Below are positions 1,707 through 32,988 of a stretch of 64,000 bases of DNA, one piece after another. Every line of letters begins with the position of its first letter. Position 1 is the first letter of the stretch. The stretch lies in the sequence record NC_061447.1. One strand, 5' to 3'. Under the pieces are notes generated by a model. It saw only the letters and a program-made list of their open reading frames with translations, did no database searches and was not told where the DNA came from. The position numbers and the translations under genes were made by a program.

Positions 1707-2496
1707 CTTCGAAGGCCCATACGGACTTGTTGAGTCTGATTCAATGGTACCACGCTGGACGTACCCTGTTAAGCATGGGCAGGTGCGTCGTGTAGAAGCG
1801 TGGGAACTCGATAGATTATCAAACGCCACAGCGCCTGTGCGTATGGTGAATGATATCCATGCTATTCATAGTACCCCTGTAGAGGACCACGACGATGTAC
1901 TCGACCTCGACGAAGAAGCCGCAGCGCTCTCGAAAACTGAGTCCCGACTTCTTATCAAGCCTCGACTCAATGAAGTCCGAGCCCGTAAAAACAAAGACCA
2001 CGTTGGTCCAGAAAACGTCTTCTCAGTCGAAAGTGAAGTAATCGACGGTGCGCTTGACAGCATAGACGAACACTCGAAAACCTTCCGTGACTATTTGCTG
2101 CATCAGGTATTCAGCCCGATACTTGGGTTTGATATCGCAGCGGGTGAAGTCGAAGCAATCTCTAAGGACTGCCTCAAAACAGATCTGGAGATTGATAGTG
2201 AACTCGTGCCTTACATTGAACGTGTTGGCTTGGCAAACATCATTGGTGTGATGTTGTCTAAGTCTGATTCGGTTCCAGAGTCTGTGCGTACTGACGTGCT
2301 GAAAGACTGGCTGATCAAATCGTTCGATGATGTGCGAGCGGAGTATAAGTTGAAACACGGAACGAATACCTTACGTGATAAACTGCGCCGCTTGATGCAC
2401 GGTAACGATGACCTTGTTGCTAAAGGCGTTGGGATAGGAACAACGCGTGGTTATACTGAACACAGGAAAAAGCTGACCGAAAATGGCCAAGCCTAA
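1699..2496 (+). CDS. hypothetical protein (adjacent to TerL; small-terminase role possible but unsupported)
   Basis: Long ORF; GTG at 1699 overlaps the previous stop; overlaps TerL start. Confidence 0.65.
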   Translation: MSNFEGPYGLVESDSMVPRWTYPVKHGQVRRVEAWELDRLSNATAPVRMVNDIHAIHSTPVEDHDDVLDLDEEAAALSKTESRLLIKPRLNEVRARKNKDHVGPENVFSVESEVIDGALDSIDEHSKTFRDYLLHQVFSPILGFDIAAGEVEAISKDCLKTDLEIDSELVPYIERVGLANIIGVMLSKSDSVPESVRTDVLKDWLIKSFDDVRAEYKLKHGTNTLRDKLRRLMHGNDDLVAKGVGIGTTRGYTEHRKKLTENGQA

Positions 2497-5311
2497 AAAG
2501 GGCCCAGCATTCACGATACGTCCGAAACGAATCGCTGCGTTTGATGCGCTGCTTGGTGACGACGTAGGTGTGTCTGCCGCTTCCGACATGGACTTTTTGT
2601 CGGAGAATAGTTCGAGTGCGATTAACTTTCTCGAAAAGGGTGAGGTCAACATTGTTGATCTCGTCGAGGGTGCTTTGGAGCAACGCACACTTGTGCCGCG
2701 CGATTTGAAGTTTGATGACAGTTCAATGCCAAAGGCGAAACACTTCCTTGAGTGGTGTACTAGTCCTGACTTCTTAAAAGCAGAACCGTATCTCGAACAG
2801 GCCCTTATTGGCCTTCGTCTATTCGGTGAGATCTGTGTACGCTGTAGTCCTAACTTGCAATGGATGTACACAGAGAACCACGAGCCGCAAGAAACCACAG
2901 CCGCGATTGAGAAGCATCTGCACCTGTTACACAATGGTGTATGCCCTCATTGCGGCGCTCGTCGTTCTGAGATGATTAAAAAGGGCGAGATGAACTTCTA
3001 CAACGAACTGGCGGTGAACGCCGGACAGCGTTGTGTGATTGCATCTACGCCTGTTGTGACTTCTCGTGGTATTATGCCTATCGGTCATATGATGATTGGC
3101 CACGACAGCCCTGGGTTCCACAAGCCGCAGCGTAACTTCAATGCGCATAACGGCCGTGAGATTCGAAGCGTCAGTCAAGTCTATGTGTCCGATGTTGCGC
3201 CAACCAAAGTCGTCATGCTTGCAAACGGCATGTGGATTGAAGCTACCCATGAGCACCCTGTGCGCACTGAGGAAGGCTTTAAGAAAGTGTCTAAGCTGCG
3301 GGGTGGTGAGCGTATCGAAATCAAACTCGGTACGAACGCATGGGGCAAGATTCAACGGCCTGTCAGTATCTACGATGCTGGCCTGTCTACGCGAGAAGAA
3401 GCGCTGCGTTACATTGCCGAGAGAAGTGTGCCTCTTGGTGATAAGATGCAGTACGTTACTGACGACACCGACGCACTTCAAATGGTGTGGTCGATTCTGA
3501 TCAACGCTGGTCATATGCCGCAAATCGTTCACGGTACGCGCATGTGGAGCTTGGTCTACGATTTGACTGAGCAGCCTGAGTGCCGTTCCGTTCACGTCGA
3601 AGTGATATCCGTTGATGATGGTACTCCGCAGGTTACGTATGACTTGCAGATGGAAGGCCTACCGCAGTTCGTTGCGTCAGGCATCCTACACCACAACAGC
3701 GGTAAGTCGGTCGTAGTAGCAATGATCTCGACCTATCTGACGCACAGGCTGCTTATGTCGCAGTCGCCTACTGGCATCTTGAGCATCGACAACACAACCG
3801 TATTGCACGGCACGTTCGTCGCGCTGACTCAGAAGCAAGCGTCCGATACACTCTGGACTCCGTACTTCAACTACATCATGGGTAGCCCTTGGTTCCAAGC
3901 CTATCATGATCTGATTCGCAAACACGAACGCCGTTACGGCATCGAGGTGATGAAGATTCGTGATACGTTCGTGCTATACGGACACAGGAACTTTGTTATC
4001 TACCCAGCAGGTCCAGATGGTCGTATTCTTCGTGGTCGAACCCGTGTACTGGCGGTAATCGACGAAGTGGCGTACTTCGACAACGACGCCCAATCGAAGA
4101 AGATTAAAGTTAGTGCTGGTGCGGTATACGGAGCACTTGACCGTTCACTCGCAACCGTTCGTGCTAAAGAAAAACGCCAGGTCGAAGCTGGCTATGATGA
4201 AGCGTTCACAGGTTACTTCTGCAACATTAGTAGTCCTGTACACGCCCGTGATAAGATCAACGAACTGCTTCGTATGTCAGTTGGCTCGAAGACGCTGCTT
4301 GGGATTCACGCTCCTACATGGAAGATGAACCCAGACATGCCGCGCAACTCCGAGTTCCTGTTAGAAGCATTTCGTCGTGACCCTGTAGGTGCCGCTCGTG
4401 ACTATGGAGCAGAAGCACCGTTGTCGGCTAACCCTTTCATCACGCAGCCTACGTTTATCGCAGATGCTATTCGTGAGAAAGGTCGTTCGATGTGTACCTA
4501 TACCCACCACATCATTCGACATAAGGACGGCGAGCGCCAGCGTTATGGTAGTCTCGTCAAAGCGGCCTCAACGACAAAAGCGTCGATACTTGCAATTGAC
4601 GCAGGCTTCTCGAACAACAGTTTTGCTCTGGTCACAGGCTCACGCGATGATGCCGGGATTATCAGTGTCGATTGTCTGGTAGAGATCGTACCGAAGCCTG
4701 GCATACCATTGAACTACACCCTCATATTCGATGAACTCCTAATTCCGTTGTGCAAATCGCGTAACGTGCGCGTGATGCTCGCTGACCAGTGGCAGTCACT
4801 CAAGCTGCTGCAAGATGCGAAACTGAAAGTGGATTCGATTGAGGAGTCTGCCCAGTACAGCCTGAAATATCAGGATATGTGGACTGTTAAGACGATGTTC
4901 GAATCGCAGCCAAGCCGCATCAGTCTGCCTCGCATGACTCACGCGAAAACTATTGCGGACACGTTGAAGTATGATGGCGACGAATATCCTCAGTGCTTCG
5001 AAAACAAACCAACAGAGCACTTGATTATGCAGCTCCAGACTGTGCAAGACACAGGCCGCAGCGTAATCAAGAACACAGGGGCAACCGATGACCTGTGGCG
5101 TGCTATGGCACTCATGGTCTATGGCTTCGAGTGTGGTGAGTATGACGAGTATCTGACGAAAGCTCCTGAGATAGCTATGAACCGTGACCCGAATCGCTTG
5201 GGACGCGTGGCACACAGACTCAACTCAGGTACTGCTGGTAGCTCGCGTGTTGCGCTTACTGGCGGTCGTGTTCTCGGTTCTGCGCGTACTCGAATGATTG
5301 GCCGTAAATAA
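2483..5311 (+). CDS. terminase large subunit, intein-containing
   Basis: After removing the intein, Walker A reads GQR/SGKS; GRTRVLAVIDE Walker B; nuclease AIDAG and DDLWRA acidic motifs; precedes portal. Confidence 0.9.
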   Translation: MAKPKKGPAFTIRPKRIAAFDALLGDDVGVSAASDMDFLSENSSSAINFLEKGEVNIVDLVEGALEQRTLVPRDLKFDDSSMPKAKHFLEWCTSPDFLKAEPYLEQALIGLRLFGEICVRCSPNLQWMYTENHEPQETTAAIEKHLHLLHNGVCPHCGARRSEMIKKGEMNFYNELAVNAGQRCVIASTPVVTSRGIMPIGHMMIGHDSPGFHKPQRNFNAHNGREIRSVSQVYVSDVAPTKVVMLANGMWIEATHEHPVRTEEGFKKVSKLRGGERIEIKLGTNAWGKIQRPVSIYDAGLSTREEALRYIAERSVPLGDKMQYVTDDTDALQMVWSILINAGHMPQIVHGTRMWSLVYDLTEQPECRSVHVEVISVDDGTPQVTYDLQMEGLPQFVASGILHHNSGKSVVVAMISTYLTHRLLMSQSPTGILSIDNTTVLHGTFVALTQKQASDTLWTPYFNYIMGSPWFQAYHDLIRKHERRYGIEVMKIRDTFVLYGHRNFVIYPAGPDGRILRGRTRVLAVIDEVAYFDNDAQSKKIKVSAGAVYGALDRSLATVRAKEKRQVEAGYDEAFTGYFCNISSPVHARDKINELLRMSVGSKTLLGIHAPTWKMNPDMPRNSEFLLEAFRRDPVGAARDYGAEAPLSANPFITQPTFIADAIREKGRSMCTYTHHIIRHKDGERQRYGSLVKAASTTKASILAIDAGFSNNSFALVTGSRDDAGIISVDCLVEIVPKPGIPLNYTLIFDELLIPLCKSRNVRVMLADQWQSLKLLQDAKLKVDSIEESAQYSLKYQDMWTVKTMFESQPSRISLPRMTHAKTIADTLKYDGDEYPQCFENKPTEHLIMQLQTVQDTGRSVIKNTGATDDLWRAMALMVYGFECGEYDEYLTKAPEIAMNRDPNRLGRVAHRLNSGTAGSSRVALTGGRVLGSARTRMIGRK
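3032..3697 (+). mobile_element. intein (222 aa) in TerL Walker A
   Basis: Begins CVIASTPV, block B ATHEHP, ends YDLQMEGLPQFVASGILHHN followed by Ser+1. Confidence 0.9.
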
Positions 5312-5350
5312 GCTAATTTAGTAGAGTCAGTTATCACAAGGAACAAGATC

Positions 5351-5566
5351 ATGAGCAAGCATTACAATCCGTTGCTGGACAATAACTCTGTAAAGTCAGA
5401 GTCAGGTACCAAAGGTGCAGTAGAGAGCACAAGCGCGTTCGTTGTTGATAGCGCTAACTACTGCCCTAAATGTGGTTCCTCAACAGTGCCGACTAAACTG
5501 CTTTCTGGTGAGGACGTCATGTTCTGCACTGGTTGCCGCGTAAGTCTCGCCATTCCGTTACAGTGA
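5351..5566 (+). CDS. small zinc-ribbon protein
   Basis: CPKC...CTGC; lies between TerL and portal. Confidence 0.7.
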   Translation: MSKHYNPLLDNNSVKSESGTKGAVESTSAFVVDSANYCPKCGSSTVPTKLLSGEDVMFCTGCRVSLAIPLQ

Positions 5567-5573
5567 GGTTCAG

Positions 5574-7517
5574 ATGGGTATTCAGGTCGGGCGTCGTCAA
5601 TTGGGCGCTGCACCCTCGGAGCCTGCAAAGAAGAAAACAAACAATTCTCTCGGCGCAGCCTCTTTACCGCGCGAGATAGGCAAAGCAATCCGCAGTGAGA
5701 GTTCGCGTCGTCACACTGACTTCGTATCTCAATCTGCGGGTGGCGCAGGGATGGCTGCCGGTAATATGCAAATTGGTACCGTGCCTCTTGATATCGACTT
5801 AGAGCCGATGATGGAAGGTATGGACTATGATGCTGACGACCGACAGCTATTCAACGTCTACCGCGATATGTATCACTTCGATCCAATCTGCGGCTCTTAT
5901 GTGGACTTGTTCTCAACGCTACCATTCTCCGATGTGAGTTTCAGTGGCGCGAAAGACAGTGTGCTTGAGCCGTATTACGAAGTGAACGAACGTCTGTCAC
6001 TGACCACCAGTATGCCGAACATCACAACCGATATTCAGGTTACTGGCGCGTTCGTTGGCAGTATGATCTACAACAAAGACCGTAAGAAGTTCATCGACCT
6101 GATGACGCACCGTTACGACAATATCGACGTGACAGCTCTGCCGTTTATCAGTCAAGACCCGATGTTCGAACTGCGCATTCCTCAGTACGTGAAGTCTGCT
6201 TTCGCCAAAGAAGGTAAACGTATTGACGCGCTGAAAAAAGAACTGGGCCCTGCGTTCGTTGATAAGTTGATGAACGACACGACGATGGAACTCGACCCCA
6301 TCGGCACAATCTACATTCCACGTAAGACGTTCAGCTTTGGCGAAGGTATCTCGGTGTTACGCCGTGTGCTGCCAATCTGGCTGATCGAAAAGAACCTGTA
6401 TCGTGGTACGCTGATTGAGTCGGGCCGTCGTCAACGCGGTATCTTACACGCCCAGCTGGGTGATGGTGATCAGTGGGAACCGTCGCAAGAAGAAATGGAC
6501 TTTATGACCGACCTTCTTCTGTCTGCGGATAGTGACCCGATTGGATCTATCATTACCACACGCTTGGGTGTGAACATCAGCGAGTTCCGTCAAGGCGGTG
6601 ACTTCTGGAAGATTACGGATATCTGGGACCAGACTGCTCAATTCAAAATGCGAGCTATGGGTATCAGTGAAGCGTTCCTCAGCGGTGAAGCGAACTATGA
6701 CTCTGGCGCTGCTGGCCTGACGATTTTCGTTGAAGCGATGCGAGCGTTCCGTGATCATCTGACGCGTAAAGTCTACTACGAGAAAGTCTTCCCTCTTATC
6801 AGTATGATGAACGGCCTTGCTGTTCAGCGTAACGGTAAGATCATCAAGAAGAACAATCTCATGGACGGCGGCTTGACCGAAGTAATGTACAAACTGAATG
6901 ACGGTAGCAAACTGTTTATTCCGAACGTGCATTGGTCTAAGCAACTGCGTCCTGACGTTGACCAAGCGATGATGGAAAACTTACGTGCGATGACTGAGCT
7001 GGGCGTTCCAGTTCCGTTACGTGCTATCGCTGCGGCTGGCGGGTACAACTTCGACCAGATTCTTATGGATCAGGATGAAGACCTCGCTATGCGTCGTAAG
7101 CTGATGGCCTATCGCAAACGTATGTCTGAAATCGACGCTGAGTTCGCACCTCCTGAGCCGGGTGCTGGTGGTGACGGTGACAGCTTTAGTTCTGTCAGTA
7201 GCATGTCTGGTGACCGTGACCTGCAACGTCGCCGTCGTCATATCGCTGGTATCGGCCTGTCATCTGCTGTTCTTGGTGGTGAGAAGCGTAAGCTGCTTAA
7301 CCGCGACTTCGGTGAACGTTCTGAAATCTTTGAACTGTCCAAGACAGGTAAGAAGAAACACGTCTTCCGTCAGTCTGTGGCGAACAGCCGTGCTAACGAC
7401 CAAATCTGGAAAGCTGCTAAGAACTATGAAGCCAACAAAACGATGCCTCTCGATAACGGCAAGGTTTCATTCCAGCCTACACCGGGTGAGCTTCGTGCAA
7501 TGTCGAGACTCCGTTAA
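5574..7517 (+). CDS. portal protein
   Basis: 647 aa downstream of TerL; YRDMYHFDPICGSYVD resembles the N-terminal motif of myovirus portals; synteny. Confidence 0.7.
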   Translation: MGIQVGRRQLGAAPSEPAKKKTNNSLGAASLPREIGKAIRSESSRRHTDFVSQSAGGAGMAAGNMQIGTVPLDIDLEPMMEGMDYDADDRQLFNVYRDMYHFDPICGSYVDLFSTLPFSDVSFSGAKDSVLEPYYEVNERLSLTTSMPNITTDIQVTGAFVGSMIYNKDRKKFIDLMTHRYDNIDVTALPFISQDPMFELRIPQYVKSAFAKEGKRIDALKKELGPAFVDKLMNDTTMELDPIGTIYIPRKTFSFGEGISVLRRVLPIWLIEKNLYRGTLIESGRRQRGILHAQLGDGDQWEPSQEEMDFMTDLLLSADSDPIGSIITTRLGVNISEFRQGGDFWKITDIWDQTAQFKMRAMGISEAFLSGEANYDSGAAGLTIFVEAMRAFRDHLTRKVYYEKVFPLISMMNGLAVQRNGKIIKKNNLMDGGLTEVMYKLNDGSKLFIPNVHWSKQLRPDVDQAMMENLRAMTELGVPVPLRAIAAAGGYNFDQILMDQDEDLAMRRKLMAYRKRMSEIDAEFAPPEPGAGGDGDSFSSVSSMSGDRDLQRRRRHIAGIGLSSAVLGGEKRKLLNRDFGERSEIFELSKTGKKKHVFRQSVANSRANDQIWKAAKNYEANKTMPLDNGKVSFQPTPGELRAMSRLR

Positions 7518-8895: not shown

Positions 8896-9920
8896 GTAGA
8901 TCGTTCGCCTCTATCGGGAAAACTCCCGTTGCTGGCACGACACCGAAGATGAAAATCAAGTACGGTAAGCTGCCTATGCTGCATATCGTTGATGCCTCGA
9001 ACTGGATGTGCCGAGCATACTTTGCCACGAACAAGAATCCGACTTACGCCAAAGATGGTACTCCCAACTATGGCTTGCGTCAGTTCATGAACATGGCGAA
9101 AGACTTGATTGATATTGCGGCGAAAGACCCTAACGGTGCGTACATTGCGTGGTGCTTCGACCCAAGCAGTTCCGCAACATGGCGCTACCGTGCGATTCAA
9201 CAATGGGCTGCCGAGAACAAAAAGAAATACGTTAAGGAGGTCTTCAAGAAGTCGAGCGACTATAAGGGCAACCGAGATCGTTCGCTGACTGTCGAACTCC
9301 CTGTGCAAATGGAACTGGCGCAGCGTATTCTTGAAATGGCTGGGTACTACGTTGGCATAAAAGCGCCTTACGAATGTGATGACCTTGTAGGCACACTGAG
9401 TGATCGCTTCAAGCACAACTATCTGGTCAAGCTATACTCGCGTGATAAAGACTACGTGCAACTTGTGGACCACAAGAACGTTGAGCTTATCATGCAAGCG
9501 CAGTCTAATGCAGCCGAGCGTCGCTTCACGCTTAAAACTGCTCAAGGATTCTTTGGCGTACCTCCGGATCGCGTTATTGATATGCTGGCACTTTCCGGCG
9601 ATAGCGTTGATAACGTTCCAGGGATTCCGGGCATTGGCGAAAAGACTGCGGCCGAGTTCATTCACCGTTATGGCGGCGCGCTCGAACTTCGAGATGCGTT
9701 GTTGAGCGGCAAGTTGAAGTCGAATGCTCGTTGGGCGCAAGCACTGACAGGCAAGGTACCTTCAATGGATATTGAATTGCAAATGGAGCTTGTAACTATC
9801 GACCGTAACGTTCCGACTTTGCCTCGCAAGATCGAAGCGTTCGCGCCAGGCAGACCTGATATAAAAGCGTTGAAAGCAACTATGAAACGCTTGGGTCTAC
9901 CGCATCTATTACACGTCTAA
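8892..9920 (+). CDS. 5'-3' exonuclease / flap endonuclease (PolI N-terminal, T4 RNase H / T5 D15 family)
   Basis: IVDAS..YFA, CFD, YKGNR, ECDD, SRDKD, GDSVDNVPGIPGIGEKTA (H3TH). Confidence 0.92.
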   Translation: MSRSFASIGKTPVAGTTPKMKIKYGKLPMLHIVDASNWMCRAYFATNKNPTYAKDGTPNYGLRQFMNMAKDLIDIAAKDPNGAYIAWCFDPSSSATWRYRAIQQWAAENKKKYVKEVFKKSSDYKGNRDRSLTVELPVQMELAQRILEMAGYYVGIKAPYECDDLVGTLSDRFKHNYLVKLYSRDKDYVQLVDHKNVELIMQAQSNAAERRFTLKTAQGFFGVPPDRVIDMLALSGDSVDNVPGIPGIGEKTAAEFIHRYGGALELRDALLSGKLKSNARWAQALTGKVPSMDIELQMELVTIDRNVPTLPRKIEAFAPGRPDIKALKATMKRLGLPHLLHV

Positions 9921-9930
9921 TGAGGATATC

Positions 9931-10473
9931 ATGACGGATAAGATTACGCAGTTGGAGAAATGGTACGGAGCGGCGAAAGTCGCGTTTAAGATGGGCACTG
10001 TCAATCCTGATGGTGATGCAGCACTGCTTCTGGCTATTTATAAGCGATTGGCGAAAGCTGCCGAAGATTCGGGTGACAAAGACACTGTGACCGCAGATCG
10101 ATTGAATCTGCAAGAGTTCCTTGAGGATTTGCGCAAAGAACTCCGCATGTACGACCTGATCTGCCGCCGTTTCAATACTGACTTGTACCCACACATCAAA
10201 GTCAGTGAAGACGTTAAAATCTATATCGCACTCATGGCCACAACTCCAGGCAGTGCGGTAATGGCAATGACATATCTGTACCTTGCTCGCTGCTATTCGC
10301 TGCAAGACATGGTGCTGAATTTCCTGCCGAGTGGTTACCCTGGTGAAGATGCTCTTGGCCTTACGTGGAGCATTCAGAAAGGGAACAGCGATGCCTTCAC
10401 CGGAAACCTGGTGGACGATATCGAAACTGTAAATAGCCTGTACAATAAGATGTATAACTCGGGAGAGAAGTAA
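9931..10473 (+). CDS. hypothetical protein
   Basis: GAGGA SD, 180 aa. Confidence 0.7.
   Translation: MTDKITQLEKWYGAAKVAFKMGTVNPDGDAALLLAIYKRLAKAAEDSGDKDTVTADRLNLQEFLEDLRKELRMYDLICRRFNTDLYPHIKVSEDVKIYIALMATTPGSAVMAMTYLYLARCYSLQDMVLNFLPSGYPGEDALGLTWSIQKGNSDAFTGNLVDDIETVNSLYNKMYNSGEK
10427..10435 (+). promoter_or_regulatory. CTGTAAATA promoter-like motif
   Basis: 38 nt upstream of the 10473 start. Confidence 0.55.
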
Positions 10474-11066
10474 TGGATTTGTCTGCTATCGGTTACGCTC
10501 CGAAGCAGTTTCGAGTAATCCCCGTTGAGAAGGGCAATCTCGTTACTGACTTCATTCAAGGTAAGTTCCGCGTTATCGGCGTTGAGTGCAACGCTCGTGG
10601 TGCTTACGGTAGTCCCATTCAAAAGAGCATTGCACGTCGATTCCCGGAGGTTGTGCGCAAGGTCGAATCAATCGACTACGAACACGAACTCACTATCGGT
10701 AAGACGCACATGGTTCGTGTGGGTACTCAGCACCGCCGCAATCTGTTTGTGGCCAACATGCACATCGCTCGCGGTTTCGGTCTCGGCCAGAACGGTTCTT
10801 CGGAAGGTTATCACAAACCTATCAATCGTTTCAGTGAGAAGTTCCTGACGCGAGCGTTCGAAGACCTGCTGGAACAGGCAGACAAACTGAACATTGCATT
10901 GGACCGACAGATCGCTATTCAGCGTTTCTATGGCGGACTCGGCGGGGTTTCGTGGGAAGAAGTATGTGTCGTCCTTGATGCTATCTGTGAGAAGCACCAG
11001 TTCAACATGTACGCATACTTACCACGCAACTACAACACTAACTTTGTGCGGGGCGTTGCGCAATAA
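10473..11066 (+). CDS. macrodomain protein (Poa1p/DarG-like, divergent)
   Basis: KGNLV...ECNARGAYGSPIQKSIARRFP...VANM...IAIQRFYGGLGGVSW matches the macro-fold layout. Confidence 0.7.
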   Translation: MDLSAIGYAPKQFRVIPVEKGNLVTDFIQGKFRVIGVECNARGAYGSPIQKSIARRFPEVVRKVESIDYEHELTIGKTHMVRVGTQHRRNLFVANMHIARGFGLGQNGSSEGYHKPINRFSEKFLTRAFEDLLEQADKLNIALDRQIAIQRFYGGLGGVSWEEVCVVLDAICEKHQFNMYAYLPRNYNTNFVRGVAQ

Positions 11067-12615: not shown

Positions 12616-13386
12616 ATGAGCAACGTTGATAAAACAATGCCGGAAGGTCGCTGGGAGTTCAATGAGCCAGTAGCTTCTGTGTTCGATAACATGCTGCAAA
12701 ACTCAATCCCATCGTATGACCGTATGCGTGACCTGACGTACCGTCTTGGTCGCCAGTTCGTAACACCTGGCTCGGCCATTGTCGATCTTGGCGCATCACT
12801 CGGTCGTGCTGTCGAACCGTTCTGTGCAGAGTTCGGCGAGTACCTGTATCTTCACGCTGCTGATCGTCCTGAGCCAGACCGTGAAGTAGGTAACCTGTAC
12901 TGCTGCTACGAAGTCGCGCCTGCGATGCTTGAGCGTCTGCGTGAAAACCCTGTGCTGAAAACGGCTAAAGCGAAGATCAGTAGTGAGTCGCTGGTGGAAG
13001 TAGACACGTTCCGCTTCGACGAGCAGGTTGAGTGCTCACTGATTCTGTCTGTGCTTACTCTACAGTTCACGCCGATTGAACACCGTCAGCACATCCTGGA
13101 GAAAGTGTACGACTCGTTGCAGAAAGGCGGCGCGTTTATTCTGGTTGAGAAAGTGTTGGGTGATGACAACTTCCTCGACCGTCTGCTGGTAGACACCTAC
13201 TACGGCATGAAAGGCGATAACGGCTACTCGCAAGAATCTATTGCGGCTAAGCGTAAGTCCCTCGAAGGCGTACTGGTGCCTGTGAAAGCTGCATGGAACG
13301 AAGAACTGCTGCGTAAAGCTGGCTTCGACCGTGTAGAGTGTTTCTACCGCGACCTGAACTTTGCTGGATGGATCGCAGTCAAATAA
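12616..13386 (+). CDS. cmoA: carboxy-S-adenosyl-L-methionine synthase (CmoA-like)
   Basis: WEFNEPVASVFDNMLQNSIPSY, DLGASLG, LTLQF, GGAFILVEK, NGYSQESIAAKRKSLE, AGF...LNF are colinear with E. coli CmoA, including the KR Arg. Confidence 0.88.
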   Translation: MSNVDKTMPEGRWEFNEPVASVFDNMLQNSIPSYDRMRDLTYRLGRQFVTPGSAIVDLGASLGRAVEPFCAEFGEYLYLHAADRPEPDREVGNLYCCYEVAPAMLERLRENPVLKTAKAKISSESLVEVDTFRFDEQVECSLILSVLTLQFTPIEHRQHILEKVYDSLQKGGAFILVEKVLGDDNFLDRLLVDTYYGMKGDNGYSQESIAAKRKSLEGVLVPVKAAWNEELLRKAGFDRVECFYRDLNFAGWIAVK

Positions 13387-13397
13387 GGTAAAACGAA

Positions 13398-14453
13398 ATG
13401 AGCGTAAGTGGTGATATTTATAACATCCCTCAACCGTTCGCCATGTATTGTGGCAACTGTGAAACTCGTGCTCAGGCAAAAGTTGCCTCAGGCACAATCG
13501 AATGGGCGGCAGAGAAAGTCTGCTGCGTTGTTGCCGACGATAACGGCCTGTTCCCTGATGTGCCTCACGTCAACATCGCAAGCGTCCATGCCACAGATGC
13601 ACGTACTCTGGTAATCGGCTGTGCACCGTTCGGCGGTAAGATTGACGAGCACATGGACCGCACTATTCGCAGTGCTATCTATCGTGGCATGAACGTCGCT
13701 GCCGCTATGCACAATCGTCTGGCTGATAATGCCGAGTACGTTGCGTTGGCCGAACAGTATAACGTCAAGCTGTATGACTTCCGCCACCGTCCTGATGCGT
13801 ACCCTCTAGGTACTGGCGAGAAGCGCAAAGGCATTCGTCTGCTAACTGTTGGCACCGATAGCTCCTGCGGTAAGAAGTTCACGACGTTGACTCTGTTTAA
13901 CGCGCTTAAGGCTCGTCATCCAGATACCGTATTCTGCTCTACTGGCCAGACTGGTTTTCTGATCAGTAACTGCGGCATCAACAACGATACGCTGGTGGCT
14001 GACTTCCTTGCAGGTGCTGCTGAGTCTTTATCTCCAGATGGTCCTGCTGATCGTGTGTATCTGATCGAAGGTCAGGGTGCTATTACTCACCCAGCGTATA
14101 CTGGCGGCAGCATGAGCCTGATTGCTGGCTCGCAGCCTGACTACTTCATCATGTGTCATGCGTGGGGCCGTAAGAACCAGCTCGGTGTTAAACGTGCGCC
14201 TGACCTGACATTCGAATTGACTGCTAACCTGGACGCAGCGGCCATTCACGGTCTTACTCCTGAGTATCTCGGTATCAGTGTCAATTTCTCTGAAAGCGAC
14301 CTGACTATCGAAGAACAAGACGATGCTATGCGCGAGATGGAGGACCTGTACTCGATGCCTGTGTTCGACCCATCGCGCGATCTGTCTTACGTTGCTGACA
14401 TTGCTGATCGACTTGAACGAGAGGCTATGTGCAGGAGCGAGTCCAATGGCTAA
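13398..14453 (+). CDS. DUF1611 family protein (DgcN-like, Rossmann plus P-loop)
   Basis: LLTVGTDSSCGKKFT, STGQTG, DFLAGAAE, IEGQGAITHPAY, GSQPD..IMCH. Confidence 0.85.
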   Translation: MSVSGDIYNIPQPFAMYCGNCETRAQAKVASGTIEWAAEKVCCVVADDNGLFPDVPHVNIASVHATDARTLVIGCAPFGGKIDEHMDRTIRSAIYRGMNVAAAMHNRLADNAEYVALAEQYNVKLYDFRHRPDAYPLGTGEKRKGIRLLTVGTDSSCGKKFTTLTLFNALKARHPDTVFCSTGQTGFLISNCGINNDTLVADFLAGAAESLSPDGPADRVYLIEGQGAITHPAYTGGSMSLIAGSQPDYFIMCHAWGRKNQLGVKRAPDLTFELTANLDAAAIHGLTPEYLGISVNFSESDLTIEEQDDAMREMEDLYSMPVFDPSRDLSYVADIADRLEREAMCRSESNG

Positions 14454-15315
14454 ACATCCTCTTCGCAAGCTGTTTGAACAGCACGTAAAGAAAGAGGTCA
14501 AAGCCAAAGAAGTGGCCGTTCTGCTTTCGAGCGGCCTCGACGGTTTGGTTAGCGCACTCGCCGCGCACGATCTCGGCATGAAGGTCCATGCCTTTACTTT
14601 CCAGATGGGCGACAACCAGAGCTTCGATAGCAAACACGCCGCAATCGTCGCACAGAAGATGGGCTGGGAGTTCACGCTCGTCAAAGTGCCTACGTCTGAC
14701 AGTGCTATCGCTCAGGGTTGGAAGACGCTACATAAAAAGTTCCGCTGCATTAAGAAGCGTGACTATGAGTGTGCGTACCCTATGGTGTATTGCTACAAGG
14801 CGATCAAAGAAGCTGGGTTTAAGTATGTGCTCAGTGGTCTGGTGGCCGACGGTTACTTCCTGTATAACCGCAATACGCACATTCAGAAAGTAAGTGGCCC
14901 GCACTCAGTCGCTGAAAAGTATCACGCGTACCGCACCGAATACTTCCGCCCGTGGATCAAAGACGGTAAGAAGTCTCTCGGTGTTGATGGGTATAACCCA
15001 AGCGGTATGCTGCAACACGAAATGCTGTGTGACCACTTCGGCCTCGTTCACGTTAACCCGTGGATGCAGCCGAAAGTATTTGATTACTTCATCAAGTACA
15101 CATGGCAGGAACTCAATCAGCCTAAGCAGAAACAACCTATTACAGAAGCATGGGCTGACCACATCGCTATTGTAGGGCATCGCCCACATCGCGGATATCA
15201 AACAGAAGCTGGAGTACCTGCGTACTTCGAACGCTTACTGGATAATCCTGAGATCAACTTCAACGGGCGCAAGCGTATCATGGATGTTGCCCGTGATTGG
15301 TCAACGAGGACGTAA
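14446..15315 (+). CDS. asparagine-synthetase-like ATP-dependent amide ligase (synthetase domain only)
   Basis: PP-loop VLLSSGLDG, AFTF, VLSGLVADGYF (cf. SGEGADE); no N-terminal Ntn glutaminase domain. Confidence 0.78.
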   Translation: MAKHPLRKLFEQHVKKEVKAKEVAVLLSSGLDGLVSALAAHDLGMKVHAFTFQMGDNQSFDSKHAAIVAQKMGWEFTLVKVPTSDSAIAQGWKTLHKKFRCIKKRDYECAYPMVYCYKAIKEAGFKYVLSGLVADGYFLYNRNTHIQKVSGPHSVAEKYHAYRTEYFRPWIKDGKKSLGVDGYNPSGMLQHEMLCDHFGLVHVNPWMQPKVFDYFIKYTWQELNQPKQKQPITEAWADHIAIVGHRPHRGYQTEAGVPAYFERLLDNPEINFNGRKRIMDVARDWSTRT

Positions 15316-19216: not shown

Positions 19217-20059
19217 ATGACCGTAATCAGTCCAATCCGTTATCAGGGCAATAAGCGAAGCCTTATCCCTCTTATTCTTGAGCACACACCAAGCGTACAG
19301 GACTGTCCTCGTATGGTCGATGTGTTTGGTGGTAGTGCTACCGTCTGCGCTAACATGCCACAGAAGTTTCGCGTGTACAACGAGCTTAGTCCTCAGGTGT
19401 TTGAGATCGTTAAGATGCTGGTGGAACAAGACCCGAAGAAAACTCTCGGTCAAGTCAAGCGTCTGGTCAAACACTGGTGTCTGACAAACAGCAACGAAGC
19501 GAACTATGATGCGTTTCGAACTGTCGTCCAGAAGAAGCGTACACCGATACTACATTACGTTGCACACAGACACGCGCACTCGAACATGCTGCGCTTCAAC
19601 CAGCAAGGTGTGTATAACGTCGGCTTCGGTGATCGTGGCCTGATTGGAAAGTTCGACGAGCTGGAGCATGAACTCACTACCTTCCACAGTCACATGCAGG
19701 GTGTCCACCTGACGAACATGAAGTATGGTAAGTTGCTGAGTCGCTTAGGCCATCAACTGAACTGTAACACGTTCTGCTACTTCGACCCTCCATATCTGGC
19801 GAGCGGTGCAATGCAGTACGGCAAGTGGACGGAAACTAACGAGCGTAACCTGCTGGCCACTCTGGAGCAACTCAATCGTTTAGGCGTACCGTGGATGTTG
19901 AGCAACGTGACCGAGCACCGACACTTCTCAAACGATTTGTTGAAGCGTTGGTTAAAGAAACATGCAACAACCGTGCTGTACCCAAACAAAAGCTATGCGA
20001 TGAACAACGGCCAGAGTGGCTCGCATGGTACTGTTGAAATTCTGGCAATGAACTATTGA
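19217..20059 (+). CDS. dam: DNA adenine methyltransferase (Dam/D12 class)
   Basis: SPIRYQGNK, DVFGGSATV, YNEL, YFDPPY, WMLSN. Confidence 0.9.
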   Translation: MTVISPIRYQGNKRSLIPLILEHTPSVQDCPRMVDVFGGSATVCANMPQKFRVYNELSPQVFEIVKMLVEQDPKKTLGQVKRLVKHWCLTNSNEANYDAFRTVVQKKRTPILHYVAHRHAHSNMLRFNQQGVYNVGFGDRGLIGKFDELEHELTTFHSHMQGVHLTNMKYGKLLSRLGHQLNCNTFCYFDPPYLASGAMQYGKWTETNERNLLATLEQLNRLGVPWMLSNVTEHRHFSNDLLKRWLKKHATTVLYPNKSYAMNNGQSGSHGTVEILAMNY

Positions 20060-22494: not shown

Positions 22495-22885
22495 TGATGC
22501 CTCGTCCGATGAAATCCGCCGTTACTACGAGCAGATTCATCGTGATGCCGAAGCGGTCATGCAGCAGGTGTGGGCGCTTCGTGGTTGGACTGTACGTTGG
22601 GCATGGCACAATGGCATTTGCGACGATTGTGAGTTTGTCTTTGACGAGACAGGCAAGTGTCGGGGTACTAAGTCTGACTGCATCCCACAACAAATGGGCA
22701 TAGCTGATCGCATTGACGAGCTAAAGCTGTTTGTCTCGCATACCAAGAAATCTGTAAAGATCAGCAACAAGGGCGATGAAAATCCAGTTGAAGGTAAAGG
22801 CCGTAATCTGCGGCTTGCCTATCTTGATTGGTTGCTCAACGTCGAAAAGAGAAAAGCGGAGGAAAGAACGTGCGCTGCACCTTAA
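22475..22885 (+). CDS. hypothetical protein
   Basis: GGGAG SD before ATG 22475. Confidence 0.65.
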   Translation: MYRQLSDDASSDEIRRYYEQIHRDAEAVMQQVWALRGWTVRWAWHNGICDDCEFVFDETGKCRGTKSDCIPQQMGIADRIDELKLFVSHTKKSVKISNKGDENPVEGKGRNLRLAYLDWLLNVEKRKAEERTCAAP

Positions 22886-23391
22886 ACGAATTACCGATTA
22901 ACATCACTCAGGCTGAACACATCATGGCGAGCGTGTTTACTCTGGCTGGTGCTTCAAAGTCAAAACGTCGTGCGACTGCTGCGATGTTGATTCATTTCCA
23001 CAACGGCTTCCCTACCATTGTGAGCAGCGGCGTTAACGGTACTGAGCCTGGCGCAAGCAACGTCATGGAGAACGAAGACCTGACGTTATCGCTCGACACG
23101 GTTATCCATGCAGAGGTGAACTGCCTAAACCGCATGGAAGAGTACAGCATGTGGGCAAACGAAGAAGATATTCTGTTCTGCACCGATTCGCCGTGCCCTA
23201 ACTGTTTGGCTGATCTCGAAGCCGAAGGCGTTAAGACAGTTGTGTATGCGCGTGAATATCGCCTGACTGATCATCTGGACGCATCTCCTATCAAGATGTT
23301 CTGTCTGGATATGGACAGCGTTGTCCGGCGTATGCAGCACGGCATCGACCGCATCAAAGAAGTGATCGCAACAACACCAGCGTCTAACTAA
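22870..23391 (+). CDS. dCMP deaminase
   Basis: GVNG, IHAEVN, TDSPCPNC, VVYAREYR zinc-deaminase motifs. Confidence 0.88.
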   Translation: MRCTLNELPINITQAEHIMASVFTLAGASKSKRRATAAMLIHFHNGFPTIVSSGVNGTEPGASNVMENEDLTLSLDTVIHAEVNCLNRMEEYSMWANEEDILFCTDSPCPNCLADLEAEGVKTVVYAREYRLTDHLDASPIKMFCLDMDSVVRRMQHGIDRIKEVIATTPASN

Positions 23392-30145: not shown

Positions 30146-30856
30146 ATGGCAAAAACTGCTATCAAAGCAAAGGACGGGAAAAAGAAAAAGAATGACGGAC
30201 TAAAGTTTGAGTTGAATAAACTCAGCTCCGTCTCTCAGTTGAAGGGGGCTACGTACAACCCGCGTTTCATTACAGACAGTCGCCTGAAAGCACTCGAAGG
30301 TTCTTTGGGTAGCTTCGGCGACTTGTCTGGTATCGTGTTCAACAACAACATCAAATCTGGTGTGTTGATCTCTGGCCACCAGCGCCTGAAATCAATCGAA
30401 GGCTGGAAGACTCGTATCGAGATTCAGAAGTCTGTTGATAAGCACGGCACAATCGGCCTGGGTTACATTCACGCGACGCATCCAAAGAAAGCTGATAAAG
30501 TGATCAGCATTCCTCTGCGTGTCGTGAACTGGACCGATAAGAAAGCCGAGTACGCTGCGAACATCGCGGCAAACGCCCATGGCGGTGAGTTCGATAACAA
30601 GAAACTCGCCAAGCTGGTTGAACAACTCGACCTCAATACAATCAAGCCTCAACTGCTCGGTCTCGACCCGTTAGAAATTCGCGGTCTTCAAGCCAAGCTG
30701 AAAGTTCAGGCCGTTGTGCAGGACGAGAAACGTGCTGGCAAGACTACTGGCCAGATGAACGGTAGTACAGGCAAGTTCAACGAGTATAGCCCAGATGATG
30801 TGGGTGACGCTCTGAACTGCACCTGCCCGCGTTGTGGATTCAAGTTCGAGGGATAA
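30146..30856 (+). CDS. ParB/Srx-like N-terminal domain protein with CPRCG tail
   Basis: YNPR.I...L..SL..FG...IVFN...LISGHQRL...ANIAAN...GEFD; C-terminal CTCPRCGFKF. Confidence 0.8.
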   Translation: MAKTAIKAKDGKKKKNDGLKFELNKLSSVSQLKGATYNPRFITDSRLKALEGSLGSFGDLSGIVFNNNIKSGVLISGHQRLKSIEGWKTRIEIQKSVDKHGTIGLGYIHATHPKKADKVISIPLRVVNWTDKKAEYAANIAANAHGGEFDNKKLAKLVEQLDLNTIKPQLLGLDPLEIRGLQAKLKVQAVVQDEKRAGKTTGQMNGSTGKFNEYSPDDVGDALNCTCPRCGFKFEG

Positions 30857-30858
30857 TA

Positions 30859-32988
30859 ATGATCATCAAGCCGCCTACGATGAAGGAAATCAACAAGCTG
30901 GATAAACCCTGGCGTGGTATGAGTTTCTTCGCAGGTTGCGGTGGTTCTTCTACCGGTCACAAGATGGCCGGTATCAACATCGTGCTGAGTAACGAGTTTG
31001 TTGACTCGGCGCGTGAGTCGTATGAAGCAAACCACCCGACAACCAAAGTGCTGCCGCATGATATTCGTCGCTTAGACCCAGGCAAGCTGATGCGCTATGC
31101 TGGTCTGTCTAAAGGCGAATTGGATTTACTTGACGGTAGTCCTCCTTGCTTTACCGAAGACACTATCATTCATACAGCAGACGGCATGAAGTTCATCTCG
31201 GACATGAACGTCGGCGATAAAGCGATGACAAGCATCGGTCAGTATCTTCCTGTGTATGACACTATGGTTCGTCCGTATGTCGGTACTATGCACAAGATTG
31301 AAACTCTGATCAGTGCAAACAACGCAACGCCCGAGCATCCGTTCTTCATTCGTCGTCCGCTTGAGTCTGGTGGCTTCTCTGACCCGTTCTGGTGTGACGC
31401 TAAAGACGTGCAGGAAGGTGACCTGGTCGGTACTCCAAGAACTACTCCTGACATTGGTGCAGATGCAGTACACGCCCAGATGGAACAACTGCCGAAGTTG
31501 ATTCAGCAGTGGGTGAGCATCCCTGAGTTCTGGTGGATGGTAGGTCACTGGTGTGATCGCGGTTCAATCGAGACTGTTAGTGGTGTAGAAGTTGTTAGCT
31601 TCGAATCGCATACCAGTCTGGAAAACGCGATGATTGAGCAGGCGTTTGATGCGCTTAAACTCAGTAGCCTGAACCGTATCGACCGCATGACAGCACAACG
31701 TAAAACGTTCCGTACTGTTATCGACGCCGAGCTGGTGCAGTTCCTGCGCCGCTTCGTCAGTGCTGGCAACAACACGTTCTCTCGTCGTCTACCTGCTCTG
31801 GTATTCCACCTGAGCACCGAGCTGAAACGTCAATTCATTCTCGGCTGCGCTGGGCATGACTACGTTACAGCGATGGGCACTGGCCTTGCTATCACGTCTT
31901 CAAGCAAGCGCTTCCTGTTAGAGATGAACTACCTGTGCTGTTCTGCGTTCAACCGTCCGCTATTCGACGGAATGATTTGGGGCGACGTGTACTTCGGTAG
32001 CGCGTTAACTCCAAAAGAGCGTAACAGTGCGCGTGAACATCTCGGCTATTTGTTCCTGCAGGAAGAGCACAACTTCTTCCACGAGTTCGATAAAGAAGAC
32101 CCGAACCTGTGGGTACAAGTGATTGAGAACCTTGCGTATCAGGCAACTTGTGACGTCTATAACTTCTCGGTTGAAGTTGACGAAACCTACGTGGCTAATG
32201 GTACTGTGGTGCACAACTGCAAAGGCTTCTCGACTGCTGGCGTGAAAGAAGAAGGCTGGGGCAAAGAAGTTAAGTACAGCGATAACAAGTATCAGCAGGT
32301 TGATGACCTGTTCGATCAGTATTGCCGTATGCTGGAAGGCATGATGCCGAAAGTGTTCACTGCGGAGAACGTTAGTGGTCTTGTTAAGGGCGCTTCGAAA
32401 GGTTACTTCATCGAGATCATGAAAGAGTTCGACAGGATTGGGTATTACGTCCGAGCGCCGCTGCTTAACGCTGCCTGGCTCGGTGTGCCTCAGTCCCGTG
32501 AGCGTATCATCTTCATGGGTGTACGCAAAGACGTAGCACACGCTCTCGGTCACAAGAGCATTAAGACCGCTGTGCCTGATGTTGTGCCTTGTGACACAAT
32601 GGCATTCCTTGCCGATGCGCTGCCGCATATTCAACGGTATAAGTCCACGAAGAAAGATATCATTACGTATCTGCCTGCGATGAACGGACCGATGCCGACT
32701 ATCACTGCGGCCGATGCGATAGCCTATGAAACTGCGCGGTTCTCGTCTGCTGGTTTCATCGAAGATAACAAAGGCCATCGCCGTAAACTGACCATCGACG
32801 AACTCAAAGTTATTTCTGGTCTGCCCTCTGACTATAAGCTGGTGGGCAAATTCGAAGAACAATGGGAGCGTCTCGGTCGTATCTGTGTGCCAGCAATGAC
32901 ACACGCTGCATCCAAAGCGCTTATCGAACACGTCTTACTTCCGTACGCGAAGAAGCGTAAGAAGAAGCCTGGCGATATCTTCAAGTAA
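30859..32988 (+). CDS. C5-cytosine DNA methyltransferase homolog with intein; motif X GN->GR (candidate carboxymethyltransferase)
   Basis: Motif I FFAGCGG, IV GSPP/C (split by intein), VI AENV, VIII QSRERIIF, X WERLGRICVP. Confidence 0.9.
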   Translation: MIIKPPTMKEINKLDKPWRGMSFFAGCGGSSTGHKMAGINIVLSNEFVDSARESYEANHPTTKVLPHDIRRLDPGKLMRYAGLSKGELDLLDGSPPCFTEDTIIHTADGMKFISDMNVGDKAMTSIGQYLPVYDTMVRPYVGTMHKIETLISANNATPEHPFFIRRPLESGGFSDPFWCDAKDVQEGDLVGTPRTTPDIGADAVHAQMEQLPKLIQQWVSIPEFWWMVGHWCDRGSIETVSGVEVVSFESHTSLENAMIEQAFDALKLSSLNRIDRMTAQRKTFRTVIDAELVQFLRRFVSAGNNTFSRRLPALVFHLSTELKRQFILGCAGHDYVTAMGTGLAITSSSKRFLLEMNYLCCSAFNRPLFDGMIWGDVYFGSALTPKERNSAREHLGYLFLQEEHNFFHEFDKEDPNLWVQVIENLAYQATCDVYNFSVEVDETYVANGTVVHNCKGFSTAGVKEEGWGKEVKYSDNKYQQVDDLFDQYCRMLEGMMPKVFTAENVSGLVKGASKGYFIEIMKEFDRIGYYVRAPLLNAAWLGVPQSRERIIFMGVRKDVAHALGHKSIKTAVPDVVPCDTMAFLADALPHIQRYKSTKKDIITYLPAMNGPMPTITAADAIAYETARFSSAGFIEDNKGHRRKLTIDELKVISGLPSDYKLVGKFEEQWERLGRICVPAMTHAASKALIEHVLLPYAKKRKKKPGDIFK
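31147..32217 (+). mobile_element. intein (357 aa) with degenerate LAGLIDADG region, inserted before the catalytic Cys
   Basis: CFTEDT..., block B ATPEHP, block F/G VYNFSVEVDETYVANGTVVHN then Cys+1; LAGLIDADG-like boxes (MVGHWCDRGS, FILGCAGHD) lack canonical acidic residues. Confidence 0.9.

Follow-up and report, generated by a model that had tools for sequence, protein, structure and literature searches.

Gene gp050 of Erwinia phage pEa_SNUABM_33 would, with a probability that we put at about 0.85, encode a DNA cytosine C5-carboxymethyltransferase of the CmoX family that is made as an intein-containing precursor. This jumbo phage has a genome of 263 kb, belongs to the genus Alexandravirus and has Erwinia amylovora as its host; the DNA analyzed here, called the window throughout, consists of bases 1-64000 of its genome (NC_061447.1 / MZ443779.1). 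The carboxymethylcytosine principle was already published in December 2025 (PMC12783734), and gp050 is a further, uncharacterised member of the CmoX family. The additions to that work are modest: an intein at the catalytic cysteine, the paired replacement of a glutamine and an asparagine in the cofactor pocket, and a variable gene cassette containing a DgcN-like gene.

The published system comes from S-B43, a phage of Synechococcus (Yang et al., Nat Commun, 7 Dec 2025; PMC12783734). In this phage CmoA produces carboxy-S-adenosylmethionine (carboxy-SAM, Cx-SAM), and the DNA cytosine C5-carboxymethyltransferase SpCmoX (PDB 8YF3) moves the carboxymethyl group onto cytosine C5 in GC contexts, giving 5-carboxymethylcytosine (5cxmC). 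An Asn-synthetase-like ligase, CmoY, then joins glycine to the 5cxmC carboxylate, and the S-B43 DNA is protected from host nucleases and resistant to HhaI. Wild-type SpCmoX accepts Cx-SAM as its sole cofactor. Its residue R350 touches the carboxymethyl group directly, standing in for N304 of the methyltransferase M.HhaI, and the R350N mutant is inactive with SAM as well as with Cx-SAM. The same study listed 5,615 candidate CmoX sequences (SPPC plus the arginine) in phage data, on contigs that usually encode CmoA and often a ligase and a ParBc protein. Neither the paper nor its supplements mention Erwinia, Dickeya, inteins, DUF1611 or the glutamine of motif IV. The pEa_SNUABM_33 genome is present in IMG/VR (L002), a database that its authors mined.

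The predicted spliced enzyme and its cofactor pocket

The gp050 precursor has 709 amino acids (aa). It matches the C5-methyltransferase family PF00145 with an E-value of 1.8e-37 and also TIGR00675, and intein and Hint matches lie in the middle of the protein. Removal of residues 97-453 (CFTEDT...VVHN) leaves a spliced protein of 352 aa (96 + 256), the length given in a preliminary description of this sequence. The gene and its parts are as follows.

30859-32988, + strand: cmoX precursor gene (RefSeq MPK70_gp050, label 'hypothetical protein'); PF00145, Intein_splicing and Hint_2 matches
30859-31146, + strand: N-extein, 96 aa; residues 21-97 align without gaps to 8YF3 residues 22-98 (E 1.7e-22)
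30925-30945, + strand: motif I, FFAGCGG, N-extein
30988-30999, + strand: SNEF, N-extein
31054-31074, + strand: PHDIRRL, N-extein
31135-31146, + strand: GSPP, end of the N-extein
31147-32217, + strand: class-1 intein (357 aa) that contains a homing-endonuclease domain of the LAGLIDADG type; recognized as an intein by Pfam and NCBIfam
31147-31149, + strand: intein Cys1
31327-31338, + strand: intein block B, TPEH
31528-31569 and 31834-31866, + strand: LAGLIDADG-like motifs
32206-32217, + strand: C-terminal VVHN of the intein
32218-32985, + strand: C-extein, 256 aa; matches 8YF3 (E 1.2e-31)
32218-32220, + strand: catalytic Cys, also the +1 splice nucleophile, C-extein
32221-32223, + strand: Lys (Lys98) in place of the motif IV Gln, C-extein
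32362-32382, + strand: motif VI, AENVSGL, C-extein
32491-32514, + strand: motif VIII, QSRERIIF, C-extein
32782-32835, + strand: motif IX region, C-extein
32860-32892, + strand: motif X, C-extein
32878-32880, + strand: Arg codon CGT, Arg317 of the spliced protein and Arg674 of the precursor; counterpart of SpCmoX R350, M.HhaI N304 and M.MpeI N374

SpCmoX is the closest solved relative of the N-extein, the C-extein and the spliced protein alike (E 1.7e-22, 1.2e-31 and 5.7e-60, respectively), and the alignment of the spliced protein, at 39% identity, runs unbroken over the splice junction. GSPP/C after splicing aligns to S95-P96-P97-C98 of SpCmoX, and residues F24, E46, F47 and D68 align to F25, E47, F48 and D69, the SpCmoX ligands of the adenine and ribose of Cx-SAM. 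The ENV and QxRxR motifs (AENVSGL and QSRERIIF) align as well; in CmoX, the Glu of the former and the Arg of the latter contact cytosine N4 and O2 (PMC12783734). With SPPC, the arginine, the F/E/F/D ligands, ENV and QxRxR all present, gp050 has the sequence features that mark the CmoX family. The exteins, compared with six relatives, show ratios of non-synonymous to synonymous substitution (dN/dS) of 0.03-0.12, and of 0.03-0.10 for the C-extein; they are under strong purifying selection, and the gene is maintained, with no decay.

The preliminary description had read an arginine in place of the conserved asparagine of motif X and had predicted from it a Cx-SAM-dependent DNA carboxymethyltransferase, linking the gene to the cmoA of the phage. 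The segment 32860-32892 (+) translates as QWERLGRICVP, and three alignments agree on the replacement. The HMMER alignment of the spliced protein to M.HhaI, a comparison that the description had called for, stops at residue 316 of the query and 303 of M.HhaI, so that R317 corresponds to N304. In the alignment to DNMT1, gp050 'erlgricvp' lies over 'hrqvgnavpp'. A MAFFT alignment of 123 sequences, in which SpCmoX and a canonical phage methyltransferase stand beside 120 homologues, brings together R317 of the window protein, R350 of SpCmoX and Asn270 of the E. coli phage A4 enzyme, and the phmmer alignment likewise puts R317, without gaps, in the R350 column. With SpCmoX as the best solved relative and R317 at the place of R350, the sequence comparison supports the predicted use of Cx-SAM. 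The effect of a positive residue at this site, also named in the description, is documented: in M.MpeI, a true methyltransferase with a CG target, the single engineered exchange N374K permits the use of Cx-SAM, and the CmoX authors themselves drew the parallel to the CmoX arginine (PMC12783734). In contrast to that mutant, gp050 is natural, has Arg instead of Lys and has lost the motif IV Gln too.

Motif IV had been described as canonical, which stands for the PPC formed by splicing but not for the residue that follows it. The spliced motif is PPC-K-GFS, with Lys where SpCmoX has Ser (PPC-S) and canonical enzymes have P-C-Q (PPCQSWS in HaeIII, PPCQGFS in DNMT1). The M.HhaI pocket around the transferable group is lined by Gln82 along with Asn304, and the Q82A mutation selectively reduces methyl transfer (PMC3526304).

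The distribution of both residues was followed in two collections, the 120 intein-free homologues that ranked best in a search of 5.8 billion proteins, aligned with the window protein (121 sequences), and 80 IMG/VR loci with flanks of up to 10 kb, scored by tblastn and representing the best 80 of at least 564 relatives. The motif X column of the alignment holds Arg in 118 sequences and Asn in 3. After the catalytic Cys stands Ala in 53, Cys in 25, Ser in 21, Lys in 18 and Gln in 4 of the sequences, Gln being kept in all three of the Asn type. The loci divide into 74 of the Arg type and 6 of the Asn type; 13 of the former are Alexandravirus-like, and there cmoA is known to lie past the fetched flank. 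Outside Alexandravirus, cmoA was found in the fetched flanks of 53 of the 61 Arg-type loci, mostly directly downstream of cmoX, versus none of the six Asn-type loci (Fisher p = 3e-5), and PCQ occurs in 5/6 Asn-type versus 1/74 Arg-type loci (p = 1.5e-6); the p-values are indicative only, as the tests were made on related loci with shared ancestry uncorrected. Thus the check suggested at the outset, of GR and GN against the presence of cmoA, came out in favor of an association. Among isolated phages, the jumbo-phage records of Erwinia (48), Dickeya (2) and Yersinia (1) contain cmoX together with cmoA without exception. Because Arg occupies the position in 118/121 sequences and the residue tracks cmoA, the motif X arginine is, as far as sequences can tell, no chance substitution, and the pocket of the predicted natural carboxymethyltransferases differs from that of methyltransferases both at the Asn of motif X and at the Gln of motif IV.

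The loss of the motif IV Gln could explain why the single reversion R350N leaves SpCmoX dead. For gp050, an R-to-N revertant had been expected to switch back to methyl transfer; this is unlikely, since the family has lost the Gln that M.HhaI needs and R350N is inactive with either cofactor. The same two sites, corresponding to Lys98 and Arg317 of gp050, are mutated in the engineered eM.HhaI Q82A/Y254S/N304A, where Ala enlarges the pocket for synthetic extended SAM analogues (PMC3526304), whereas the natural enzyme would bring a charge for the carboxylate. Other combinations also exist: Flavobacterium phage FpV9 (L086) and Parabacteroides phage PD491P1 (L088) have SPPC-[S/P] and Gly-Met in motif X, and Methylophilales phage Melnitz (L089) has SPPC-[S/P] without Gln and Gly-Leu in motif X. 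No phage cmoA match was obtained in FpV9 and its Flavobacterium relatives.

An intein at the catalytic cysteine

The intein sits between GSPP and CKGFS, immediately ahead of the catalytic Cys. Eleven homologous inteins, with 23-86% identity to that of the window, keep C1, T61, H64, H356, N357 and the +1 Cys without variation. Its AF2 model (pLDDT 79) has a HINT fold plus a LAGLIDADG domain fold, and Foldseek pairs the model with the endonuclease-containing inteins TliVMA, PI-SceI and PI-PfuI (7QSU, 1EF0, 1VDE and 1DQ3; E 8e-12 to 6e-10), the match to TliVMA 7QSU reaching TMq 0.66 (E 8e-12). A PDB sequence search with the intein alone gave nothing meaningful, the best hit being a CD1 chain at E 0.1. 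With PI-SceI, TliVMA and PI-PfuI the window intein shares Cys1, the TxxH of block B, the terminal His-Asn, the +1 Cys and the HINT plus LAGLIDADG architecture, at a sequence identity of only 9-14%. It differs from them in its host, an enzyme of the C5-methyltransferase fold, in its insertion directly before a catalytic Cys and in the degeneration of the LAGLIDADG acidic residues. The latter motifs read WCDRGS and GHDY in the window, as against WLGDGW and FADG/AADG in the inteins of loci L045 and L053; their positions vary within Alexandravirus, and the motif-2 Asp is absent in the intein of Yoloswag (L014). The homing endonuclease is probably inactive in the window intein.

Since the +1 nucleophile is the catalytic Cys of the methyltransferase fold, the enzyme would be inactive before splicing. 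The position of the splice junction is confirmed by the intein-free homologues, all 120 of which have an uninterrupted SPPC-x-x-[FY]-S; the closest to the window protein, P0001 and P0002, are 70-71% identical to it and read through the site. An intein occupies the same site, in an open frame, in 51 of 51 Erwinia, Dickeya and Yersinia jumbo-phage records. Its sequence diverges faster than that of its host, the intein identity dropping to 36-38% where the C-extein holds 75-76%, with an intein dN/dS of 0.10-0.28. The site is also used in canonical Asn/PCQ enzymes, at locus L045 (8162-10156) and in E. coli phage A4 (L085 292647-294545), whose C5-methyltransferase reads GFP/C...VVHN/CQAWS, with LGNG in motif X and intact-looking LAGLIDADG motifs (FMGDGW, YFDADG). 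As canonical enzymes hold inteins there, the site would be a homing site of the wider methyltransferase subfamily, and the catalytic Cys is, by these alignments, a common homing site of methyl- and carboxymethyl-transferases. Literature searches for inteins in C5-methyltransferases found none; phage methyltransferase inteins are described, in the literature searched, for N6/N4 methylases only (PMC5050341).

Two further intein arrangements were observed. An 87-kb viral contig (L053) has two CmoX-like paralogues, at 3800-5989 and 9728-10732, followed by cmoA; the upstream copy contains an intein about 25% identical to that of the window, and the downstream copy is intein-free and of the Arg type. 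In the window, the large terminase subunit (942 aa, 2483-5311) contains a second intein of 222 aa at about 3032-3697 (CVIAST...ILHHN, +1 Ser; Pfam Intein_splicing E 5.7e-4), which splits the Walker A motif as NAGQR/intein/SGKS. A paper on phage PaBG had already noted terminase inteins in the group to which the window phage belongs (PMC7412058).

Companion genes and the cassette behind cmoA

Four further genes of the window bear on the predicted pathway.

12616-13386, + strand: cmoA (gp017), RefSeq label 'tRNA methyltransferase'; carboxy-SAM synthase homologue
13398-14453, + strand: DgcN-like / DUF1611 protein (gp018), PF07755 (E 5.8e-46) and PF17396; RefSeq 'hypothetical protein'
14446-15315, + strand: CmoY-type ATP-dependent amide ligase (gp019), PF00733 (E 1.2e-13); RefSeq 'hypothetical protein'
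30146-30856, + strand: ParB-like protein (gp049), phrog_620 (E 3.3e-32); directly upstream of cmoX

The cmoA product matches E. coli CmoA (4GEK) with an E-value of 4.2e-30, with an insertion at about residues 67-98, and shares 30% identity with the assayed SpCmoA (E 2e-28), which is itself active though only 27.9% identical to the E. coli enzyme (PMC12783734). Conservation of Arg199 of E. coli CmoA was dropped as a test of activity, the active SpCmoA lacking Arg at the aligned position. Lying upstream of gp050, the gene is separated from the gp050 start by 17.5 kb and from the Arg codon by 19.5 kb, and the distance of 18 kb first given for it was thus a fair one. One gene from cmoA, gp019 encodes a protein of 289 aa with the synthetase domain of Asn synthetase (PF00733 only) and without a glutaminase domain; its alignment to SpCmoY spans 276 columns at 34% identity (E 5e-52). 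Pfam gave no match to gp049 even at E <= 1. The ATG of cmoX follows the gp049 stop by 2 nt, the junction sequence being TAATAATGA, and the two genes are probably translationally coupled; in 23 of the 80 IMG/VR loci, a gp049 homologue precedes cmoX.

Between cmoA and the ligase gene sits gp018. Its DgcN name comes from NCBIfam only (NF041892, E 1.5e-83, below the cutoff), and the protein is a candidate for an extra hypermodification step; literature searches on DUF1611/DgcN returned unrelated papers only. A single-protein locus search with gp018 retrieved close relatives only, and an alignment query added one distant contig. In viral contigs, DgcN-like genes were found nowhere but next to cmoA/cmoY, namely in Alexandravirus and in a single unrelated contig of 216 kb, where ParB, CmoX, DgcN-like protein, ligase and CmoA are encoded contiguously in that order. 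The stretch from cmoA to a conserved neighbor of 206 aa forms a cassette that takes three forms among near-identical phages. The window (12616-15315) has cmoA, the DgcN-like gene and the ligase. Phage pEa_SNUABM_1 (L082 12234-17111) has cmoA, a 420-aa protein, the DgcN-like gene, an Ala_racemase_N-like gene and the ligase. Phage phB78 (L083 12634-14316) has cmoA and a single, different CmoY-type ligase, 35% identical to SpCmoY and about 24% to gp019. This variation hints that the final base may differ among Alexandravirus phages and from that of S-B43.

In the pathway that we propose, the 357-aa intein would excise itself, with intein Cys1 and the +1 Cys as nucleophiles, joining GSPP to CKGFS and so creating the catalytic PPC loop. 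By homology to the assayed SpCmoA, gp017 would turn SAM and prephenate into carboxy-SAM. Mature CmoX, by homology to the assayed and crystallised SpCmoX, would flip the target cytosine, attack C6 with its Cys and transfer the carboxymethyl group of Cx-SAM to C5, with 5-carboxymethylcytosine in the phage DNA as the product; Arg317 would pair with the carboxylate of the cofactor and Lys98 would stand where canonical enzymes have the motif IV Gln. By homology to SpCmoY, gp019 would adenylate the 5cxmC carboxylate and couple an amine to it, which is glycine in S-B43. More speculatively, gp018 may add or prepare a further group. By analogy, the modification would likely shield the phage DNA from host nucleases.

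The likeness to S-B43 thus comprises the C5-methyltransferase fold, SPPC without a following Gln, the motif X Arg, the adenine and ribose ligands, ENV/QxRxR, the encoding of CmoA and a CmoY-type ligase by both phages and a ParB-like neighbor as in many CmoX contigs. On the other side, gp050 carries an intein at its catalytic Cys and Lys in place of Ser after it, cmoA and cmoY stand away from cmoX in the window while they adjoin it in S-B43, the window cassette has the additional DgcN-like gene, and S-B43 is a cyanophage whereas the window phage belongs to the enterobacterial jumbo phages.

Some neighboring genes were recorded besides. Between cmoA and cmoX lie a Dam-family N6-adenine methyltransferase gene (19217-20059; TIGR00571 E 2e-29) and a gene that carries the annotation dCMP deaminase (22870-23391). 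The closest intein-free cmoX homologue (L090) has genes for Dam-type methyltransferases and a dCMP deaminase nearby, as are also present in the window, and in addition a thymidylate synthase gene. The intein-containing CmoX family is PHROG 36001, listed under 'unknown function'. Chorismate mutase yields prephenate, the co-substrate of CmoA. In a 278-kb metagenomic contig (L091, 10001-13010), and likewise at L092, cmoX is followed by the gene of a type II chorismate mutase (PF01817, 117 aa), then by cmoA and lastly by an Asn-synthase-like ligase gene. A search of the window and of all fetched loci for a chorismate mutase of this type found none besides these two. The phage of L091 seems to secure its own prephenate supply, a matter listed as an open question in the CmoX study (PMC12783734).

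Competing readings and consequences

Several points weigh against the assignment of gp050 to the CmoX pathway. The cmoA product falls below the TIGR00740 equivalog cutoff (E 3.5e-42; 144.7 vs 193.3 bits) and scores 108.2 bits against NF011995, whose cutoff is 285, and its gene is not adjacent to cmoX. At its 39% identity to SpCmoX, gp050 has a motif VIII-IX region that is unalignable, and therefore its target specificity is not transferable from SpCmoX and a GC specificity is not to be assumed. That gp050 splices at all, we infer from sequence. A nearby phage cmoA is missing from eight of the Arg-type loci and from Moraxella phage Mcat8, which is compatible with a CmoX function because host CmoA is able to provide Cx-SAM, as seen in E. 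coli (PMC12783734). The co-occurrence counts come from the best 80 of at least 564 loci, which are phylogenetically non-independent. A literature search found no paper on the DNA chemistry of pEa_SNUABM_33 or of any Alexandravirus.

On some of these grounds gp050 might be taken for an ordinary SAM-dependent methyltransferase producing 5-methylcytosine, its Arg being tolerated or serving as a DNA contact and cmoA acting on tRNA to make cmo5U. The PF00145 and TIGR00675 matches, the RefSeq label of cmoA as a tRNA methyltransferase and the separation of cmoA from gp050 would fit. We nevertheless consider this very improbable: the Arg aligns to R350, which contacts Cx-SAM in an enzyme that does not use SAM, the Gln whose replacement in M.HhaI specifically lowers methyl transfer is lost (PMC3526304), cmoA tracks Arg and not Asn, and the cmoA cassette includes a CmoY-type ligase, whose S-B43 counterpart acts on 5cxmC in DNA. 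Equally little credit is due to the view of gp050 as a disabled remnant, with an intein at its catalytic Cys that splices not at all or too inefficiently. It is true that the precursor lacks a contiguous catalytic loop, that LAGLIDADG is degenerate (WCDRG vs WLGDG in L045 and L053, with the motif-2 Asp lost in Yoloswag) and that a PDB sequence search revealed no close intein. Loss of the endonuclease, however, is the usual fate of fixed inteins and leaves splicing unaffected, each of the 51 Erwinia, Dickeya and Yersinia records keeps an unbroken frame with the insertion at the same site, the splicing residues are invariant over inteins that retain as little as 23% identity to that of the window (23-86%), and purifying selection acts on the exteins (dN/dS 0.03-0.12) and on the intein (0.10-0.28).

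A different question arises within the CmoX assignment itself, namely whether Cx-SAM is used as predicted while gp019 and gp018 lead to another amide or to an elaborated base in place of 5-glycyl-carboxymethylcytosine. We regard this as a serious possibility that falls somewhat short of an even chance. It would agree with the identity of only 34% between gp019 and SpCmoY, with the insertion of the DgcN-like gene between cmoA and the ligase, with the variation of the cassette among the close relatives pEa_SNUABM_1 and phB78, and with the alternative amines predicted for other ligase clusters (PMC12783734). Against it, no more than two independent viral lineages have DgcN-like proteins, and gp018 scores under the cutoff of the DgcN family, the reaction type itself being uncertain. 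A little more tentatively, since the cassette contains the DgcN-like gene, acquires the Ala-racemase-like and 420-aa proteins in a sister phage and undergoes swaps, Alexandravirus may have a cytosine hypermodification built on the 5cxmC handle that is unlike 5-glycyl-carboxymethylcytosine, or else the installation of the handle may be gated by intein splicing.

The published basic picture of the CmoX pathway is unchanged by the findings in the window. With gp050 read as a CmoX enzyme, the carboxymethylcytosine pathway would be placed in culturable Erwinia, Dickeya and Yersinia jumbo phages, where plaque assays and genetics are feasible, and public labels would be corrected for gp050, the ligase and the DgcN-like protein (each 'hypothetical protein') and for cmoA ('tRNA methyltransferase'). 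The replacement of the motif X Asn by Arg together with that of the motif IV Gln by another residue (mostly Ala, Ser, Cys or Lys) affects the same two sites that engineers mutate. The variable cassette after cmoA suggests that there are several end products. Moreover, if installation of the handle were gated by splicing, the conditions of splicing would set the timing of phage DNA modification.

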